The translations under genes and the position numbers were made by a program. Of a stretch of DNA of 64,000 bases, positions 3,399-49,946 are shown piece by piece. Below the pieces are notes generated by a model. That model worked only from the letters and a program-made list of their open reading frames with translations, was not told where the DNA came from and ran no database searches. This stretch comes from Piromyces finnis finn. Taxonomy: Eukaryota > Fungi > Neocallimastigomycota. Position 1 is the stretch's first letter, and the number at the start of each line of letters is the position of its first letter. Where the stretch lies: assembly GCA_002104945.1 (NCBI GenBank), contig MCFH01000006.1, forward strand, positions 744,001 to 808,000. The letters are read 5' to 3'.

Positions 3399-5269
3399 TC
3401 TTAGAATGAAAATATATTTTGGTTCTTATTTAAATGCGTAGTACTGATAATTTCTTTTTTTTCTTGTAAAATTAATTATTCTTATTAGTATTAACTTTTA
3501 AAACGATAATTTTATAATTGATTATTATATTTAAAATTGGTATTTTGGTTAATACAAGTTAAAATTTATTTTTTATATTCCTTTTTTATTTTATGTATTT
3601 TTTTTTTTTTTTTTTTTTGAATGAATGAATAAAAATTGGAATTTAATTTATATATGAATAAATAAAGAAAAAAAAAAAAGATTTTGATTATATATACTAT
3701 AAATATATTATCAATATATTATGTTATATAATATTATATAATATTATATATATAAATAATAAAAAAGTAAACAATTATTATTAAATAATATATTTTATTT
3801 ATGATATATCAAGAATACAATAAAAAAAAAGTAAAAAGGAAAACATATAGCTAACCAAAAAAAAATTAATAATAATATTAATAGTAATTATCATTAATAC
3901 TAATTAAAAATAATATAATTAGAATAATAATAATTAATAGTAAATTATATAATTAGTTGGAAAGGAAAAGTATAAATAATATTAAATCATGATCAATATT
4001 AATAATTAATTAAAGAAATAGATTTATCTAAATTTTTAGAATTTAAAATTGGTATAATTTAAAATAATCTAACCTTGCATTGCCAAATTATAGGTAAATT
4101 TTAAAGTTTAAATAAAACATATTTTTGGTTGGAAGATTCGAAGTAACTTAACCAAATATTATTATAAATATTTTATTTTCTTTTTTTTTTTTTTTTTTTT
4201 TTGAAATAATTTATATGAAAAGTATATTGAAAAAATCCAACAATTTAGTTTTTATTATTAAAAATTAAAATAATCTCAATTAAAATTTAATATAATATCT
4301 AAATATACTATAATTACAATCTTTTAACCTATAAATTATATTAAATCTATTTAAAATTAATAATGTGGATTAAATCTAATTTGATATAAAAAATAAATAA
4401 TCAAAAGATTAATTATCTATATAAATTTCTACAATAATGAAAAAAAGGATACAAAGATAAAAATTTTTAAGTACCACTATACTAAAGATTTAGTATAAAA
4501 ATAATGTATTTTATTTAGGAATTATATTATTAGAATCCATATTAACAAAATAATATTAAAAATGCTTTTATTTTGTTAATTAATTATCTTACAACTATTT
4601 TACAAATAATTATTTCTAAGAAAAATCATATAGAATTATCATAATATTTCTAAAATTTATTTGCTTCATTTCTTTTAACTGCAGAAGTAAATATCTCCAA
4701 ATAATTAAAATTTGATACTTTATATTATGCATTATAGAATATAAATATCAAAAAAAAAATTTATTTAATTTAAATAAAAATTGATAGCATATATTCAAGT
4801 AATTTCAATTAAAAGTAAAGGATACTATTGTATAATAACTGTTTTTTACTCAAATAGTTGTCTAAAAGTCAAAATTAAATTTTGTCAGAAAATGAAAATT
4901 ATGATATTCATTAGTTGCATAGGCATTTCTATGTCTTGATGTCACTTTATCTCTATTGAATATTAGAAAATAATAAGACATAGTTTTGGTAAAAAAATTA
5001 ACTAATGACCTTCAAAAATAGAAAGCATCTATAAATACCTATTTTAACCCTTATAATTTTTATTTTCCTTTAAACTATTATTGTAAAAACTTATCCTAAT
5101 AAATTATATAGATATTTTTTAAATGCAAACACTAGAATAATACATTGAATCACTTGATTTATTGATAATTGATACTATTAATATAATAAATAATATATAT
5201 ATATATAAATAAAGATATAAAAATATAATAATTATTTAAGTTTCATAAAAGTTTGATTAGCTCTTCAAC

Positions 5270-6315
5270 TTGTACTGTGTGATCCCTACATAATAAATTT
5301 AATGAAATAAAAAGAAAAATAGCATCAAATACAATAATATGGTATCCACTAAACTCCCCTACGAGTTCATAATGTTTTTATTCGAAGAAATACTAATAAT
5401 GAACTCTGTGTACGAAACATTAGAAATGTTCCTTTGCTATATTGGTATAACGTCGGCGCTCTTGATTACGTTTAGGTGTCTTACCAAATCTATCAAAAAG
5501 TAGCTTCACCTAATGATAGGGAATATTTTAGTAAGAATAACCGTGAGACCCTCTACATATGGAACATGAAACCCCGATGAACTGTAAAGCTGTTCATTCA
5601 AATATCTTTACTCAGCCTTATTGATTTGTAGCTTATTATAAACTAAAGGTCCACCAAGAAGGAACGTAAAAATGTAGTTGTAAATAGTTTTTCTTACTTC
5701 CATTTCAAGGAGTAAGTAAATGATGAATTTATTTTTGTATTTATTGTGAAAAAGGGTAAAAAGATCGTCAAGAAAGCTAAATGAAGAAGTTTTGTATTCA
5801 AAGAATGCAGGACATACTAAAATCCAATGATAAAAAAATTGTTCATCATATCCATATCGAATACGAATAATCCAAGTAATTCCTAAATTTAAGTGAGGTT
5901 TGTCGAGACCGATATGCATTAGGCAATTTGAATTAAGGAATCTGTTGTTAGTATATCTGAGGGCTTTATTAAGGCTACTTCCAATAATGTTCTCTCATAT
6001 TTTTAGTACTTTTAAAATTTATTTTCATAAGTTTCTTATGTAGTAAACAAGATTCTTTGGCCCAAGAGTAGTGAGACATGGGAGGAATAGATCGGTTGAA
6101 ATTTTTAATAATACAGTTTGATTTTCTCCATTTAATAAAGTATTTCACTTGTTGCGCAGCACAAATACCAGGAATCCTCAAATCCCTTATAAGAGCATGC
6201 AGGCTAATAAATGAATTTCGTTCAAAAACAAATTCCTTGCTATTTAGACTTTTATTGTGAAAGCTATTGACATTCCATAAAACAACAGTATTGATAAGAG
6301 ATTGGACTCTGCGAG
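5270..6315 (-). mobile_element. Degenerate non-LTR retrotransposon (LINE) ORF2 C-terminal fragment (copy X)
   Basis: Frameshifted translation GICAAQQVKYFIKWRKSNCII...HYWK / GITWIIRIRYGY...HWILVCPAF...FLLGG...LTKIFP aligns by eye with the LINE at 13.7-15.1 kb (CALAQVRCFNKWKNSNCII...FYWK / GFYWLLKARSGY...HWLLDCPTF...FLLGG...LTKIMP). It has stops, frameshifts and an internal deletion. The 3' limit is approximate. Confidence 0.75.
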
Positions 6316-6609
6316 TTTTTTTTTTTTTTTTTTTTTTTTTTAACTAACATCAAATATTTATTTTTAAACTCTATTATTATTAATTTAATTATAATTTTAT
6401 TACATATAATAAAAAATATAATAAAATTTAAATTAAAAATAAAAAAATAGGTTTAAATAAACACAAATAAATAAAAATTGGGTATAATGTATTCCAGTAA
6501 TTTTAATTAAAGTAAGAAAGCCACTGTTATACTAAAGTATAATAATTGTATTTGACTTCCAATGAGACACCAAGCCAAAGATCAAAATTTTGTCATGGGA
6601 CAAAATTAT

Positions 6610-7028
6610 TGATACGGGTTAATTTTATGTAGAAAGAATTAAACTTTAATTAATATATATTTTATTAATAATTTTATTTATAACGTTCCAATATTTCTAT
6701 TCTGTCTAAATACTAAAACGTTCTGTCGTTGTCAAATATTAAAATTCTAACTAAAACAAGAAGCCCTTTTTAATAATATTTATTCTAGTCTATTTATACT
6801 AATGAGGCTTACTTAATAATTAATTGTCCAATTATAAGGCTGGAACTATATGGATCATTCATTTACAATACTCTTTTACATTACAAAATATTACATTTGT
6901 CGTACATTTACATTATATTCTTATACATTGTAGAAATAATTAATATTATAATAAATCTATATAAATTTAATATTAGGAAAAATTACTAATATAATAATAT
7001 GTTCAAGTCACATATTATTTTTATATCA
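6610..7028 (-). repeat. 3' LTR
   Basis: Direct repeat of 13166-13584 with no mismatch found by eye. A short purine tract (GAGGGGA on the - strand, ~7033-7039) lies just before it in element orientation. Confidence 0.95.
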
Positions 7029-11734: not shown

Positions 11735-12621
11735 ACTTTTTGGGAAAAGTTACCAGACGCATGAGGGGTATTCCTAGGCTGAGTGTAAGATGAATTATAC
11801 CTGTTTTGATACTGATTTGGAGGATTATAAGCAGGATAAGGAGTGTAATATTCAGATTGATGATAAGTGGCATAACCATCACCCATTGGTGCAGGAGGCC
11901 TGTTGTTGAAATAAGGATCTGAGTAACTAGGTCCAGGAGCTTGGACAGGAGCAACCGGTGTTGAAGGATAATTGTAACTGGAATTATTGGAATATCCATA
12001 AGAATAAGGGTTAGGATTGGAGTAATGACTATCCATCGGACGATACTGTGGTGTATAAGCACCATGAGGATTATAACCAGGAGTAAAGCTACTGGAATAA
12101 GAGGCGTATTCTTTCCAGTATTCGTGGTTCTTTGCAGTTTGGCAAGCCTCATCAATAGTTGCGGGCTCGCGAATGGTGAGGGCATGTTGTAATTCTGGAC
12201 GACTACGGATAGCATGCATATAGTCGTACACAGAAACTCTGGGGCGATATTCCGCATCCAAAGAATGGTAAAGGTCCAAAAACCTATTATTGAATTCATC
12301 CACTGTTTCTCCAGGACGAATAACCATAATCTTTAATCGGCGAAAACCATCCTGTTTGTTGTTCCAATAGGCTAACCTATTCCTAATTGATGGCATACAT
12401 TCATCCAAAGAGGGTGGCCTGTTCCACATGCGTTCAAACCTAATTAGTTCATCAACAATTTCTGGGAAATCGATACAACCGACAATGGTATCGAACTTTT
12501 CATTCTCATCAACAATGCCTTCTCTAGAAAACCATGCTTCCATCTGACGTTTCCACACATCTTCGTTGCAATGGGTTTTGTCCAAGATAGGAAGTCTATA
12601 ATACGAAGATCTATTAGCCAT
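11674..12621 (-). CDS. gag: Retrotransposon Gag with C-terminal CCHC zinc knuckle
   Basis: 315-aa ORF with a capsid-like region (RPGETVDEFNNRF), a Tyr/Pro/Asn-rich linker and CYRCHQPGHLQKDC. Confidence 0.95.
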   Translation of the reverse strand: MANRSSYYRLPILDKTHCNEDVWKRQMEAWFSREGIVDENEKFDTIVGCIDFPEIVDELIRFERMWNRPPSLDECMPSIRNRLAYWNNKQDGFRRLKIMVIRPGETVDEFNNRFLDLYHSLDAEYRPRVSVYDYMHAIRSRPELQHALTIREPATIDEACQTAKNHEYWKEYASYSSSFTPGYNPHGAYTPQYRPMDSHYSNPNPYSYGYSNNSSYNYPSTPVAPVQAPGPSYSDPYFNNRPPAPMGDGYATYHQSEYYTPYPAYNPPNQYQNRYNSSYTQPRNTPHASGNFSQKVCYRCHQPGHLQKDCGRLNH

Positions 12622-43340: not shown

Positions 43341-46300
43341 TTACATAAAGTACATGACACGCTCTAATTCTGGCCTTACTGTTCCATATTGAACTATTTT
43401 TTCTAACGAACAATTTCCATTATCAACAAGATTATTACTCATTTTATCTTTTGACTTATTCATTAAATCAATTTGATTATTACTATTTAAAAAATTAATT
43501 GTATAATTTTCTTTTAATGTTAATGAATTTATTGTACCATCATTTATTGTTGAAGTTGTTTCGGGCATAGAAATTAAAGATGCATATGAAGCATTATTAC
43601 TACTACTACTACTACTACTACTACTATTATTATTATTATTATTATTATTATTGTTGTTGTTGTTGATGTTATTATTGCTATTATTAATATTATAATTCAT
43701 TGATTTATTATCACAAATAGTATTGATATTATTAATCATTAAATTTCCATTATTTTTATAATTATTGTTAATGAGATTTTGCTTGTCGTTACTATTGAGG
43801 TAACTGTTGTTAAAATTGGAATCAAAATTAAGAGGGTTGAAAACTTTGTTAAGATTATTCAATTTACTTAATAGATTGTTACTTGAAGTACTACTGTTAT
43901 CATTATTTTTATTGTTTATATTATTATTTTTTATTCCAAGCGAGTTTGAATTGAGAATGATATTATTATTAGAACTATTAGGATTTAATACAAGATTTAT
44001 ATTACTGTTATCATTGGTGGCTGAATTACTAATGACACTATTTTGATTTATTGATGAAGAAGAAACGAAATTATTTTGATAAGTATTTAATTTATTAAGT
44101 GAAGAAACACTATAATTTTCCAATGATGCTTCTGTTAAATTAGAATTTATACTCATTTGTGACATTTTATTTTTTAAAGTTGAGGAATATAAGTTATTTA
44201 TTGAAGTATTAAATGGTTCATATATTTTTTCATTTTTATTTATTAAGTTGTTAATATTTTCAGCACTATTATTATTAGTTGTTGATGATGTAGAACTTTC
44301 TTTAATTGTTATACTATTAAGACTACTATTACTACTAGATGGGTTTTGTAGTGTAGTAGTACTACTATTATTGCTACGACCTATTTCCATTGTTTTTATA
44401 TAATTTGAATTATTCTTTTTATTATTGTCATCATTCTTTAATGAAGAACCAGTTCCTATTGGTTGTTGTTGACTTTCTCCTATGTAAAAACTATTATTTT
44501 TGGAAGTATTATTGTTTATTTTTACGGGAATTCCTTTTTCTTCAAATACATCTTTATTCAAATCTCCTTTAAAGGATGAATTTAATTTATTAATATTAAA
44601 TATACTTGAGTCATTTAGTAAAAAGATATTACTATTATTTTTACTATTAGTAGCAGTATTATTATTACTATTTATACTATTTAAACTGACATTACTATTG
44701 ATAAATGATTTATTCAATTCATTCAAATTAAGAAAGTCCAGATTTTGGTATGATGTTTTATTAAAATCATTTTCATTTATATTTATATTACTGTTTATAG
44801 TTGAAGGATTATTGAAATTATTAAATATATTACTTGAACCTTTGAAATTGTATTTATAGAAATTTTGAGTACTTTCATTACTGTTCATACCATTATTTAT
44901 TCCATTAGTAGTTCCATATGACATTGTATTATTCATAGTTGGATTGATATTAGTAGATAGATTTGGATTAAGATTCATATTCATAGCTATTTTTGAGTTT
45001 TTCATTCCATTATTAGTACTGATCATGTTAATATTGGTATTAATATTTGGATTCATATTTCCTTTCATATTGACATTCATTGAATTTATATTTATAGTAT
45101 TATTAGTATTCATTAAATTCATATTTAAATTATTTGCAACATTCATTTGATTCATATTCATATTACTATTATAATTATTATTTATATTATTAATACAATT
45201 TAAGTTACTATTAGAATTATAAAAACCTTTTTGTATAGTATATTGATTTTGATTATTTCTATTGAAAATTTTACTATTTCTATTATTATTGGAATTATTT
45301 GGTGTGTATATATGGAAACGTGCTCTTGCTGCTACTAAATGAGCATAATAAGCTGGAGGACATACAGATACACTTTTAGTAGCTCTACAGTAGAGGTAAC
45401 AAAGTCGATAGGTTAGTTCTTGAAAAGTATCTGGGATAAAATTGTTTTCATCCAACAAAATATGATAATGAGTTGGCTTTGAAGTTCCTTGTAAACCTGG
45501 GTGAGAACATAAATAGAAATCAAACTCATTAGGATGAATAATACCTGTGTCAACTACTGTTCCTGGTAATATATTTCCATAGTGATCTGAATCATTTTTA
45601 TGAAGAGGAAAGAAACGACAATGATGTCTTTTTTGAACCATAACATATGTAATTTTTGGTGTGATATTAATTTCAATAGATTGGCAAGCTTTTCTAATCA
45701 TTTCAATTTCAGCTTGAACAATTTCTTTGAATTGATTATCTGGAGCATTATCACGATAAAAGATGATTCTTTTAGGTTTCTGATTTGTAGTTTGATAATA
45801 TATCTGAATTAAATTCTTTGTCATTTCAGTTAAATTTTGAATAATTTCTTGATGATTTGTTTGAATACTGATAGTAGCAGCATATCTTGAACAATACCCA
45901 TCAATTGTACCAACCATAGCTGCAATAGACAAACCATTTGAATTACCTATGTAGAGAATAAATTATATGAAAAAATATTTAATATATATTATATTATATT
46001 ATTAATATATTAGTTTAATATATCAGTAAATATATTTTTAAAATATTTACTTGCTGACGGATGAGAAACATTAGCACCAAATAAAATAGTTGGTTCTTCG
46101 TTAACAAATGGTAATTGATGTTTTGATAAATATGAATTCATTCCTCCCAATTTTGCATTAATCTTTAGACATACATTTGCACAATATTGTCTTTTGATTG
46201 ACATGATATGCTTACCTTGAATGCATTGAGTAGAAATACCGATTACAGTATCACCAACACGTTTAATATCTGCATATAAAGGTACACCTGTATTTGAAAG

Positions 46301-49298
46301 AATACATAAAATGAGTTGTGGGCGAACATAAGACATATTAGCTGCTTTATAAAATGAATTCCAAAGAGTAGTTTGCACATCGACTTGCATGTTAGCATAG
46401 AAAATTGGGGGTTGAGTCATATTTACTTTAACACCAGTTTCTTCACAAGTATTAATTAATTGGGAAATGAATTTTTTAACTTGATATAAACTGAAGCAAT
46501 TTTCAGATCCGAAAACAACTACTGACCAACATTCTAAAATGGCACCTTCTGCTACTTTTTTATCTTTTAAATTCCATGAACCTTCAACTGGTAAAAATTC
46601 TGGTTCTGATGAGAGTGGATGATATGAGATTAATGGTGGGTCTAATATTCTTGCTTTTATCACTGCCATTTCTGAACCAATTTTTATATTAAAATCTTTT
46701 AAGTGATTAGAATTTTCCTTATTTAAAATAGACATTGTATTTGAAATTTTATGTGATCTTTTATGAGGGGGTTGGCATGTAAAACGAATCATATCTGCTG
46801 TTTGTCTTTCATTTAATTTACGACATAATCTTTGGGCTGGTGCAACTTCGCAAACTTCCATTGGTAAATATATATGACGATTAGGATCTCCTACAATTAA
46901 GCATGGTAAATGTGAAAATTTTAACTTGTAATTATAACGTGTTTTAAAATATTCTGTAACAGATATTTCTTTGTTATTATCACCATATGGAAACATTGTA
47001 TTATTAGCAGAATAATAAGTAACTCTTGAAACTTTGTATTTTCTTTTTTGTTCATTACGATGTGTTATTACTATTTTTATTCCTTTTATTGTTTTCTCTA
47101 CTCTAAGTCTGTCATGTTCTGAAAATGAATGCGTTAAATCCTTTGAAGAACTATATCCAAGAATATGAGCAACAACCTCTAATACCGGTCCTTTTAAGAG
47201 TTTTATTAACAAAGCCAAGTTGGAATTATGATTATGTATTTAGTATATAAATAAAAATAAAATTGTTAAAATATTAAATATTAATTTACCTGATTCATAA
47301 AATGCTGTAGCACTAACATCAAGGTTAATTAGCATTCTTCCACTAGTTGGATGAATACTTTGATAAAAACCTTTCCAAAGTTGTGCACCATTACTTATCG
47401 ATGTTGATTCTTCAGATGTATAGAAACATTTTCCAATATTTGTGTATAGTGATGATTGGTGGTATCTTAATAATATATCTAATGCATTGATAGTGACTGA
47501 AGGTGCCTCTTTTCTTTTTCCATTCAAAAAGTCCATTAAACTATTCATATTAATATTATTTAATTTTGTGATAATAATTTTATATTTTTTTATACTATCA
47601 TTTTGGGATTCACTATATATATATACCAATTAATTTTATTATGTAAATGTAAATTAAATTAAAATTAGAATTAAATTAATTATTAATATATATTAAGGTA
47701 GTATGTACCCTTTCTCAGTAATTTTGTCATAGTAATCTGAATATTCAACATAAAAAGACATCACAGGCGATACAAAAGGTAATGGTCTATATTATTTAAT
47801 AATTTATTTTTAGTATTACGCGTAATTAAATAATATATATAAATATCTTTTTATAAGAATAATATTTATATTAAATAGTAACAAGTATTTTAAATTAATA
47901 ATCATACTTTGATGCGTAAATATTCTTTTTTCCATCAAAAATTAAATTTAAATTTTTTAAATTACTATTTTGATTTTCTTCTTCCCATTTTTGATAAATT
48001 TTTTGTAGTTTTATTGATGTAGTTTCTGGTTCAACGGTAACTTCATAATGATATATATCAAATTTTGGTAATGATAAAATTGGATAGAAATTTGCTTTAA
48101 TAGAGATAAGCTTTCCATTTTTACCATAACCTGGGCGTGTTGGAAATTGAATAGTAGTTGAGGTGTTGATACTTGATGGTTGGAAATTTAATGAATTACT
48201 ATTTAAATTGATATCTTTGTCAAAAACATTATTTGAAAAAAAACCTAAAGAATTTGATGGTGATAGTGAATGATTAAAGGAAGTATCAGATGAATCATTA
48301 TTAAATATATTCATTGAATTATTCAATATTAAGTTTAATGATGTATTAAAGGAAAATTTTGATGATAAATTATTATTAGTATAAAACATATTTGAATTAA
48401 TATTTTCCTTGTTAAAGGAAAGAGAAAATTCATTCTTTTCTGAAAAATCATTGTTTTTATTAAGTGTATCTAAACTTAGTCTATTTGGTGAACTATCCAT
48501 AAACATTAATGATCTTTCATTATTTCTATTCATATTGAAAAAATTTTTATTATTTATTACTACTTGATTTTGCTCATTTTTACTTTTATAATTGGACTTT
48601 AGATTTTTATAATTGTTTATAGATGATGCAAAAAGTTCTGATCCATATAAACTAGTTGTTGAATTATTATTGCTATTATTATTTCCATTGTTGCCATTAT
48701 TACTGCTATGATAATTTAATAAATCGTTATTTTGAAAATTATTTAATAGCATTTCTTTTCCTTCATTATAAACATTAAATTTATAATATTGGTTTGATGT
48801 ATAAACGCTTTGATGATGAGATGATAGATTATCAAGAGAGGATATATCATTTATACTTTTAAAATAATCATAATTATTTCCTTTATTTAATGGATTGCTA
48901 TATTGCTGCGAATTTAATGTGTAATAATCATTGCAATTATAATTATTATTTTCTGTAAGAGGATAGCTAGTATTTTTATTCAAAAATTCAAAATATTCAT
49001 CATTTTTATTATTGGTGCTATCTTTTTTTGTAATTGATATACACTTTTTATTTTTTTGTATATATTTATCTTCTTCAGTGTCTGATGAATCAAAATAATT
49101 ATATTGTGAACTAAAGGATGGAATTTCATATTTATTGCTGTTATTGCTATTTTTATTAGTCTTATTATTATTAATAGAGAGCATTTTTAACGAAAGTTTA
49201 ATATTTTCAATGTCTGATATTATTGGTTTTGCTTGCCTTTTGTTACTATGTGAGTTATCATTTTTACTATAACTATATTCTTGAAAAATAGTGTTCAT
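43341..49298 (-). CDS. AGO: Argonaute (N-L1-PAZ-L2-MID-PIWI) with Asn-rich N-terminus and a very large low-complexity insertion near the C-terminus; predicted non-slicer
   Basis: FPTRPGYGKNGKLISIKANFY, WKGFYQSIHP...LINLDVSATAF, YFKTRYNYKL...LPCLIVG...YLPMEVC, QCIQGKH...LKINAKLGG, FGANVSHP, FYRD, QKRHHCRFF, FYLCSHPGLQGTSKPTHY, PPAYYAHLVAARAR, and a terminal VMYFM*. About 5 exons. Confidence 0.95.
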
Positions 49299-49946
49299 TT
49301 TTAAACTGTATGAAAATAGTTTCTATATATTTTATATATAAATGATATATGTTTAAAAAAAACTAAAAATACTTTGTAATTAAAATATCTTATATATGTT
49401 AAAATTTAACATACATCATTTATATTATTTAAAAGATTGATAAAATGCGTTTTTTTTCTTCCTTTTGTTTTTATTTATATTAAACTTCAATTTTATTTAT
49501 ATTTCTTGATATATATAAACAAACTAATGAAAATTCACTATTACAATAAAAGAAAAAAAGAAAAAAATAAAACATAAATAAATTAAAAAATAATTTTAAA
49601 ATTTATGTTTAATTATTAAAAAAATTTTTTGAAAAAAAATATATCAATTAATACAAAATTTATAAAATATTATAATAAAACAAAAAAAAAGTAATTGCTT
49701 TATTAAGATATTATTTATTCTTATATGACAAAATAGTTTTAATACAAATGAAAAAAAAAAACCATATAATAATTTGACTTTTCTTAAAATGTTATTATTT
49801 ACTATTTATTAATAAATAATTGTAAATTTTATTAATTAAATTTTAAAAAACAAAATTTAATTTAAAATTTATAATTTAATATATTTTTATTTTTTGATTT
49901 AATTTATGATAAAACTAAACAAACAAAAATAATAAGAATTTTTGAG

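Follow-up and report, generated by a model that had tools for sequence, protein, structure and literature searches.

A conserved Argonaute of the anaerobic gut fungus Piromyces finnis with asparagine at the first catalytic position, predicted to bind guides without slicing

Slicing by Argonaute (AGO) proteins requires a D-E-D-H/D catalytic tetrad (PMC6284064), although possession of the tetrad is not sufficient (PMC12477606). The first aspartate of the tetrad, within the motif GADVTHP, has been replaced experimentally in human AGO2 (hAGO2), where D597N and D597A are engineered slicer-dead variants, and in vitro the D597N protein gave no cleavage (PMC6048500). Here we describe an Argonaute gene from Piromyces finnis in which the same residue is replaced by a change chemically identical to D597N. 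The human mutants are laboratory changes in a slicing enzyme, whereas the P. finnis change is natural, old and fixed, and is joined by further changes in the loop past the second catalytic aspartate.

Non-slicing AGO paralogues are already well known, and the P. finnis gene adds to that class. In human AGO1 the tetrad position affected is the last histidine, and in AGO4 it is the third and fourth positions; both proteins work with GW182 partners, and we know of no such partners in anaerobic gut fungi. Like the predicted P. finnis protein, AGO1 and AGO4 are full-length, guide-binding non-slicers kept beside a slicing paralogue (PMC8874510), but the tetrad positions hit in them differ from the first position altered in P. 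finnis. Among fungi, QDE-2 of Neurospora crassa belongs to the same family and has the same PIWI fold (PDB 2yhb, matched at 1.5e-38). QDE-2 is described, in work cited by PMC5796279, as slicing and as nicking the passenger strand for QIP, whereas the P. finnis protein lacks the first aspartate. Natural replacement of this aspartate also occurs in AGOs of the Glomeromycotina (Rhizophagus irregularis and relatives), where at least 13 proteins, and related environmental sequences, read GASVTHP or GASVIHP, with tyrosine at the position in one case. They make up a separate fungal group of probable non-slicers, which differ from the P. finnis protein in carrying serine rather than asparagine and form part of an extensive AGO expansion particular to another, unrelated clade.

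Our literature searches on RNAi in the Neocallimastigomycota retrieved a single paper (PMC5796279), to which additional queries added no other. It reports that anaerobic gut fungi lack an RNA-dependent RNA polymerase (RdRP) and that knock-down with exogenous siRNA works in Pecoramyces, and it gives AGO copy numbers without mention of catalytic residues (PMC5796279).

Gene structure and expression

The Argonaute gene lies on the minus strand at 49298..43341 of the analysed window, a stretch of 64,000 nucleotides of P. finnis DNA, and the window around it is very AT-rich (GC 15-39%). It has five exons and encodes 1,845 aa (CDS 5,538 nt). An initial annotation, made from the letters of the window, had placed an Argonaute of an early-diverging fungus at 45200-46080; this span holds the asparagine codon together with intron 4 and the part of PIWI encoded by exon 5, and the organism is indeed a member of the Neocallimastigomycota. 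We built the five-exon model from the public P. finnis protein, splice signals and RNA joints. Protein and domain searches were run exon by exon, with public full-length models standing in for the joined spliced protein.

Exon 1 (47908..49298, minus strand, as are all features below) starts with the ATG at 49298 and encodes an Asn/Ser-rich N-terminal extension of ~395 aa followed by the start of the ArgoN domain (Pfam), with 100% identity to residues 1-464 of the public protein ORX57242.1. Intron 1 (47907-47787) reads CT..AC on the plus strand, which is GT..AG on the minus strand, and is crossed by the joint 47786/47908 in RNA contigs from runs X3 and X4. Exon 2 (47709..47786; 78 nt) falls inside ArgoN, matches ORX57242.1 and ends at a donor that reads gg/gtacat. 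Intron 2 (47708-47613) was placed from its GT..AG ends and the public model, and is bridged by none of the listed contigs. Exon 3 (47290..47612), which begins at the acceptor tatatag/t (47613/47612), encodes the end of ArgoN and the L1 linker (Pfam ArgoN and ArgoL1), and intron 3 (47289-47191, GT..AG) is crossed by the joint 47189/47289 in X3 and X4. Exon 4 (46051..47190) encodes, by Pfam matches, PAZ (2e-27), L2 (ArgoL2), MID (ArgoMid) and the first third of PIWI (Piwi positions 1-88), and stops just past GANVSHPSA. Intron 4 (45947..46050; 104 nt, GT..AG) was read from the sequence and is confirmed by the joint 45942/46047 in X3 and X4, which skips 104 nt.

Exon 5 (43341..45946) is a single open frame that encodes the remainder of PIWI (Piwi positions 95-301, 7.8e-70), an Asn-rich insert, the conserved C-terminus and the stop codon. 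The insert (43410..45299; 32% Asn, 15% Ser) adds ~630 aa to the loop that leads from the last PIWI helix to the C-terminal strand; it is recognised by its composition, is in frame and is represented in RNA contigs. It is followed by the conserved AGO C-terminal tail ...RPELERVMYFM (43344..43409). Near the end of the insert, an (ATT)n array of 119 nt and ~39 copies (43593-43711) encodes poly-Asn/poly-Ser. All six AGO domains (ArgoN, ArgoL1, PAZ, ArgoL2, ArgoMid and Piwi) are complete, score above the Pfam cut-offs and occur in the order of the AGO clade.

RNA contigs came from runs X3 and X4, which are two samples of one study, and DNA contigs from run X1. The X3 and X4 contigs skip exactly three introns (47907-47787, 47289-47191 and 46050-45947), each with GT..AG ends on the minus strand, and therefore represent spliced RNA. 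One contig of 2,100 nt covers 45288-45942, 46047-47189 and 47289-47590 with zero differing letters; because it is spliced and runs across the codon in question, the mRNA reads AAT there. A further RNA contig covers part of exon 1 (48523-49299), and within exon 5 the contigs are unspliced (45288-45942, 44797-45136 and 43781-44601) and cover most of the insert. The (ATT)n array was left out of the read comparison, and the last 380 nt of the gene lie outside the read evidence. Contigs from X1 (DNA, possibly the run from which the assembly was made) and from X2 had holes over the AAT codon and added nothing. The initial annotation had named a cDNA reading GAT and a gene that is not expressed as findings that would speak against it; spliced contigs from both samples read AAT, and their presence in X3 and X4 demonstrates expression. 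We conclude that the P. finnis gene is a genuine, expressed, five-exon AGO-clade Argonaute.

The public counterpart of this gene is ORX57242.1 (1,205 aa), with 100% identity to exons 1 and 4 and 99.5% to the PIWI part of exon 5. Its 3' end is wrong (window 43341-45318, minus strand): the model leaves the frame and ends shortly past YYAHLVAARA, although the genomic frame stays open through the Asn/Ser-rich insert of ~630 aa to the true C-terminus ...VMYFM, both of which the model lacks. Because the RNA contigs continue unspliced beyond the last donor of ORX57242.1, its 3' intron is unsupported. Related models have comparable defects: the end of the Neocallimastix californiae model ORY67918.1 is likewise out of frame, and in Piromyces sp. 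E2 the orthologue is annotated as two partial models. At the N. californiae locus (11810-11894 of the excerpt), the frame of the Asn-rich insert shifts within poly-(AAT), so that PIWI and the MYFM end do not share a frame; an intron missing from the annotation, or an indel introduced when this low-complexity DNA was assembled, could account for the shift. C-terminally truncated public models of anaerobic-fungal AGOs matter to anyone expressing these proteins.

Catalytic site, guide pocket and constraint

On the minus strand, the letters ggt gct aat gtt tct cat ccg encode GANVSHP where canonical Argonautes have GADVTHP. The AAT codon (46070..46072) encodes Asn971, which is assigned to the position of the first catalytic aspartate, hAGO2 D597, by a gapless alignment of exon 4 to AtAGO10 (fgadvthp) and hAGO2 228-603; the RNA contigs and the codons of orthologues agree. 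Exon 5 aligns to hAGO2 610-824, with HQEII at E637, FYRD at D669 and YYAH at H807. These correspond to Glu1011, the glutamate finger (GAA, 45846..45848), to Asp1043, which is followed by an altered loop (D-NAPDNQF in place of the canonical D-GVSEGQF; 45729..45752), and to His1180 (CAT, 45339..45341). A complete D-E-D-H/D tetrad is absent, and the P. finnis protein has N971-E1011-D1043-H1180. The 5'-phosphate pocket of the MID domain is represented by Y903, K907, Q919, K940 and K944 (46151..46276), located through the motifs LYADIK, STQC and CLKINAK in alignment with AGO10 and hAGO2; we take these residues to correspond to hAGO2 Y529, K533, Q545, K566 and K570. The arginine past the catalytic histidine (R1185) and the ...VMYFM tail are also kept, and the pocket set is complete by sequence. 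The initial annotation had reported the same picture in all its parts: GANVSHP with AAT at 46070-46072, which the strand reading and the gapless alignment to D597 confirm; RDGVSEGQF turned into RDNAPDNQF, and retention of E (HQEII), the second D and H, both borne out by the exon 5 alignment to hAGO2; and MID residues kept in YADIK, TQC and LKINAK, all of which were located.

Across ~150 alignment columns with conservation of 93% or more among canonical AGOs, the clade of the P. finnis gene deviates at only 14. Four of these are the first catalytic aspartate and three positions directly past the second (G1044N, V1045A and E1047D), where the residues replaced show conservation of 94% or more across 50 canonical AGOs.

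Asparagine at the first position, together with RDNAPDNQF, was present in every orthologue found, namely those of Piromyces sp. E2, N. californiae, N. lanati and N. 'constans' and in ~18 environmental fragments. The codon itself is AAT in all three genomes examined (P. finnis, Piromyces sp. E2 and N. californiae). At the loci of Piromyces sp. E2 and N. californiae, too, PIWI is followed by a long insert and ...VMYFM, and the convergent neighbour gene is also found at the N. californiae locus (65% identical). The asparagine predates the split between Piromyces and Neocallimastix. Keyword searches of protein records retrieved no named orthologues from Anaeromyces, Pecoramyces, Caecomyces or Orpinomyces.

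We estimated dN/dS by the Nei-Gojobori method, with dS of 0.55-1.1 over all comparisons. For exon 4, dN/dS was 0.014 between P. finnis and Piromyces sp. E2 and 0.018 between P. finnis and N. californiae; for the PIWI part of exon 5, the corresponding values were 0.017 and 0.043. The core of the protein is thus under very strong purifying selection, and from one genus to the other PAZ, MID and PIWI retain 93-99% identity at dS ~1. What we found here, a fixed and maintained tetrad substitution in a constrained, expressed gene, is what distinguishes naturally slicer-deficient AGO paralogues.

Asn occupies the first position in each of the 46 anaerobic-fungal AGO sequences that belong to the two asparagine-bearing types (the second is described below), whereas 258 of the 273 other AGOs with a recognisable motif have Asp. 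The exceptions among the 273 were the Glomeromycotina block with Ser, one sequence with Tyr, and one Asn copy in a fused model from Citrus. This Citrus unshiu model (2,034 aa) joins an AGO copy that reads GADVTHP to another that reads GANVTHP; the latter is a plant example of the Asp-to-Asn replacement and could be a pseudogene or an artefact of the gene model.

An assembly or sequencing error, a mutation private to the strain or a decaying pseudogene could each in principle produce an asparagine codon at this position. With RNA contigs that independently read AAT, the same codon in the genomes of three species, Asn in 46 of 46 related sequences, and an intact frame of 1,845 aa evolving at a dN/dS of ~0.02, we regard these explanations as excluded for practical purposes; low dN/dS (0.014-0.043) combined with Asn in all orthologues fits neither a pseudogene nor an error.

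Argonaute paralogues and phylogeny

A whole-genome scan with the Piwi domain identified three AGO loci in P. finnis, two of which carry asparagine at the first catalytic position. The second asparagine-bearing paralogue (contig C113, about 737754-743684) is an intronless ORF of 1,976 aa with an Asn/Ser/Gln-rich N-terminal extension of ~1,070 aa. Its motifs GGNVTNP, KKECII, FYRDCISESQY and YYAHLAA give N-E-D-H, and GGNVTNP departs from GADVTHP at the His as well as at the Asp. The GGNVTNP motif is unchanged in Piromyces sp. E2, three Neocallimastix species and ~20 environmental sequences. This type (ORY80548.1 in N. californiae) resembles the five-exon gene in its N-E-D-H residues, its long Asn/Ser-rich regions, its presence in both Piromyces and Neocallimastix and its C-terminus (..EIMYFM compared with ...VMYFM), but differs in its intronless structure, the length of its extension, its GGNVTNP motif and its loop, RD(S/C)ISESQY, and is only 39-54% identical to the five-exon gene.

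The third paralogue (C165:452000-461000, minus strand, about 3900-6800 of that piece) is the sole canonical D-E-D-H AGO of the genome, so that the asparagine-bearing gene coexists with a full-tetrad copy. It carries GADVTHP, KLEIIQD, RDGISEGQF and YYAHLAA, and is compact and complete to ...FMYYM, without an Asn-rich insert. It is also the most divergent of the three, with the longest branch in both trees, and the protein sets that we retrieved contained no orthologues of it. The glycine past the second catalytic aspartate, present in 96% of canonical AGOs, is replaced in both asparagine-bearing types; the DEDH paralogue keeps it despite its greater overall divergence. Pairwise, the three paralogues are about equidistant, with identities of 39-41% across the exon-4 region and of 52-54% within PIWI.

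Outside the anaerobic fungi, the best matches to the P. finnis protein were chytrid AGOs (62-67% in PIWI), the structures of hAGO2 and AtAGO10 were matched at ~1e-70, and trees placed the protein among fungal AGOs. A position as sister to the main chytrid AGO clade appeared in tree A (SH-aLRT 89), was absent from tree B, and is treated here as weak. The initial annotation had called for a phylogeny of the AGO paralogues with the tetrad mapped onto it. In trees from two independent regions, each asparagine-bearing type formed a fully supported clade, but the relation between the two types was not settled. The free tree implies two Asp-to-Asn changes, while a single Asn clade was not rejected by an AU test (p 0.583), the constrained tree being 3.66 lnL units better. 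A single origin is possible; because long branches and shared composition bias could group the two types, we make no claim on one origin versus two.

The genome also contains three Dicer-like loci with paired RNase III domains (C146:476458-478578, C46:333899-334977 and C178:648260-649361), two of them in very long open frames of 2,065 and 3,179 aa. A search of the P. finnis genome for RdRP (PF05183), run without a positive control, returned no match, in agreement with PMC5796279.

A predicted slicer-inactive silencing effector

The initial annotation had predicted a slicer-dead, guide-binding protein, on the ground that DEDH/D is needed for slicing. The cited tetrad requirement bears out that premise (PMC6284064), and the analogy with D597N, the six complete domains, the MID residues and the conserved C-terminus support the prediction. 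We consider it probable, as far as residues and domains can indicate, that the P. finnis protein is a guide-binding, slicer-inactive silencing effector. Small RNAs made by one of the three Dicer-like enzymes would be loaded as guides and would then pair with targets. Cleavage of those targets would be impossible because one of the carboxylates that hold the catalytic Mg2+ is missing. Silencing would instead proceed through stable binding and recruitment of partners, possibly by way of the long Asn-rich disordered regions, a role for these regions that is speculation. Without slicing of its own the protein would not nick the passenger strand, and its maturation would need mismatched duplexes or another factor. 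RNAi that works by cleavage would be left to the single DEDH paralogue, and with it the knock-down by siRNA described from a related fungus.

The disordered regions account for ~1,000 of the 1,845 residues, with 23% and 32% Asn and no Trp, and we found no GW or RGG partner motifs in them. Asn-rich tracts are common throughout this AT-rich genome. The regions are candidates for partner or condensate interactions, and the roles that the initial annotation listed further downstream (translational repression, chromatin silencing and sequestration of small RNAs) are guesses.

Two other readings of the protein have to be weighed against a slicer-inactive effector. The carbonyl oxygen of asparagine can ligate Mg2+, so residual or metal-dependent activity is conceivable, and the N-E-D-H site might still slice, slowly, conditionally or with another metal such as Mn2+. 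Both asparagine-bearing types have E1011, D1043, H1180 and the NQF Phe even though their PIWI domains are only ~54% identical, and the entire PIWI domain is strongly constrained; retention of these residues in two old paralogue lineages could mean that the pocket still does something. Yet the homologous D597N change in hAGO2 abolished cleavage in vitro (PMC6048500), and human AGO1 and AGO4 do not slice despite having most of the tetrad residues (PMC8874510). The replacement of the glycine past the second aspartate and of two of its neighbours is, moreover, what would be expected after loss of catalytic constraint, and we judge continued slicing to be quite unlikely. Almost as improbable, in our assessment, is a protein that takes no part in guide-directed repression and serves as a sponge or reservoir for small RNAs, or as a scaffold whose functional part is the Asn-rich regions. 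The extent of the disordered regions and their lack of GW or RGG motifs would suit such a function. The identity of 93-99% in PAZ, MID and PIWI between genera, however, fits full guide and target handling better, and the insert is mostly poorly conserved (64% in N. californiae over a stretch that includes PIWI).

The initial annotation had further described a specialised Argonaute. This description is doubtful, as the gene is the slowest-evolving of the three AGOs (dN/dS ~0.02) and asparagine is found in two of the three paralogues; on the same grounds, absence of slicing seems to be the prevailing condition among these AGOs, with the DEDH copy as the exception. What sets this case apart is that the best-conserved AGO of the lineage carries the asparagine and that the change is common to two of its three paralogues. 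A broader scenario, which we put forward tentatively and consider doubtful, is that the main and most conserved AGO lineages lost slicing before the genera of these fungi radiated, perhaps once, ahead of the duplication that produced the two asparagine-bearing types, that endogenous silencing in a phylum lacking RdRP is mostly slicer-independent, and that the Asn-rich, prion-like regions act as a built-in effector or condensate scaffold in a role like that of GW182-type partners in animals.

The P. finnis gene adds to Argonaute evolution a natural and strongly constrained case of Asp-to-Asn replacement at the first tetrad position. Anaerobic gut fungi are under development as lignocellulose-degrading platforms, and few genetic tools other than RNAi have proved to work in them (PMC5796279). 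Should two of the three Argonautes be unable to slice, siRNA knock-down must rely on the C165 DEDH copy, to which we attribute, by inference, the knock-down seen in Pecoramyces, and endogenous regulation by small RNAs in these fungi may work mainly without cleavage.
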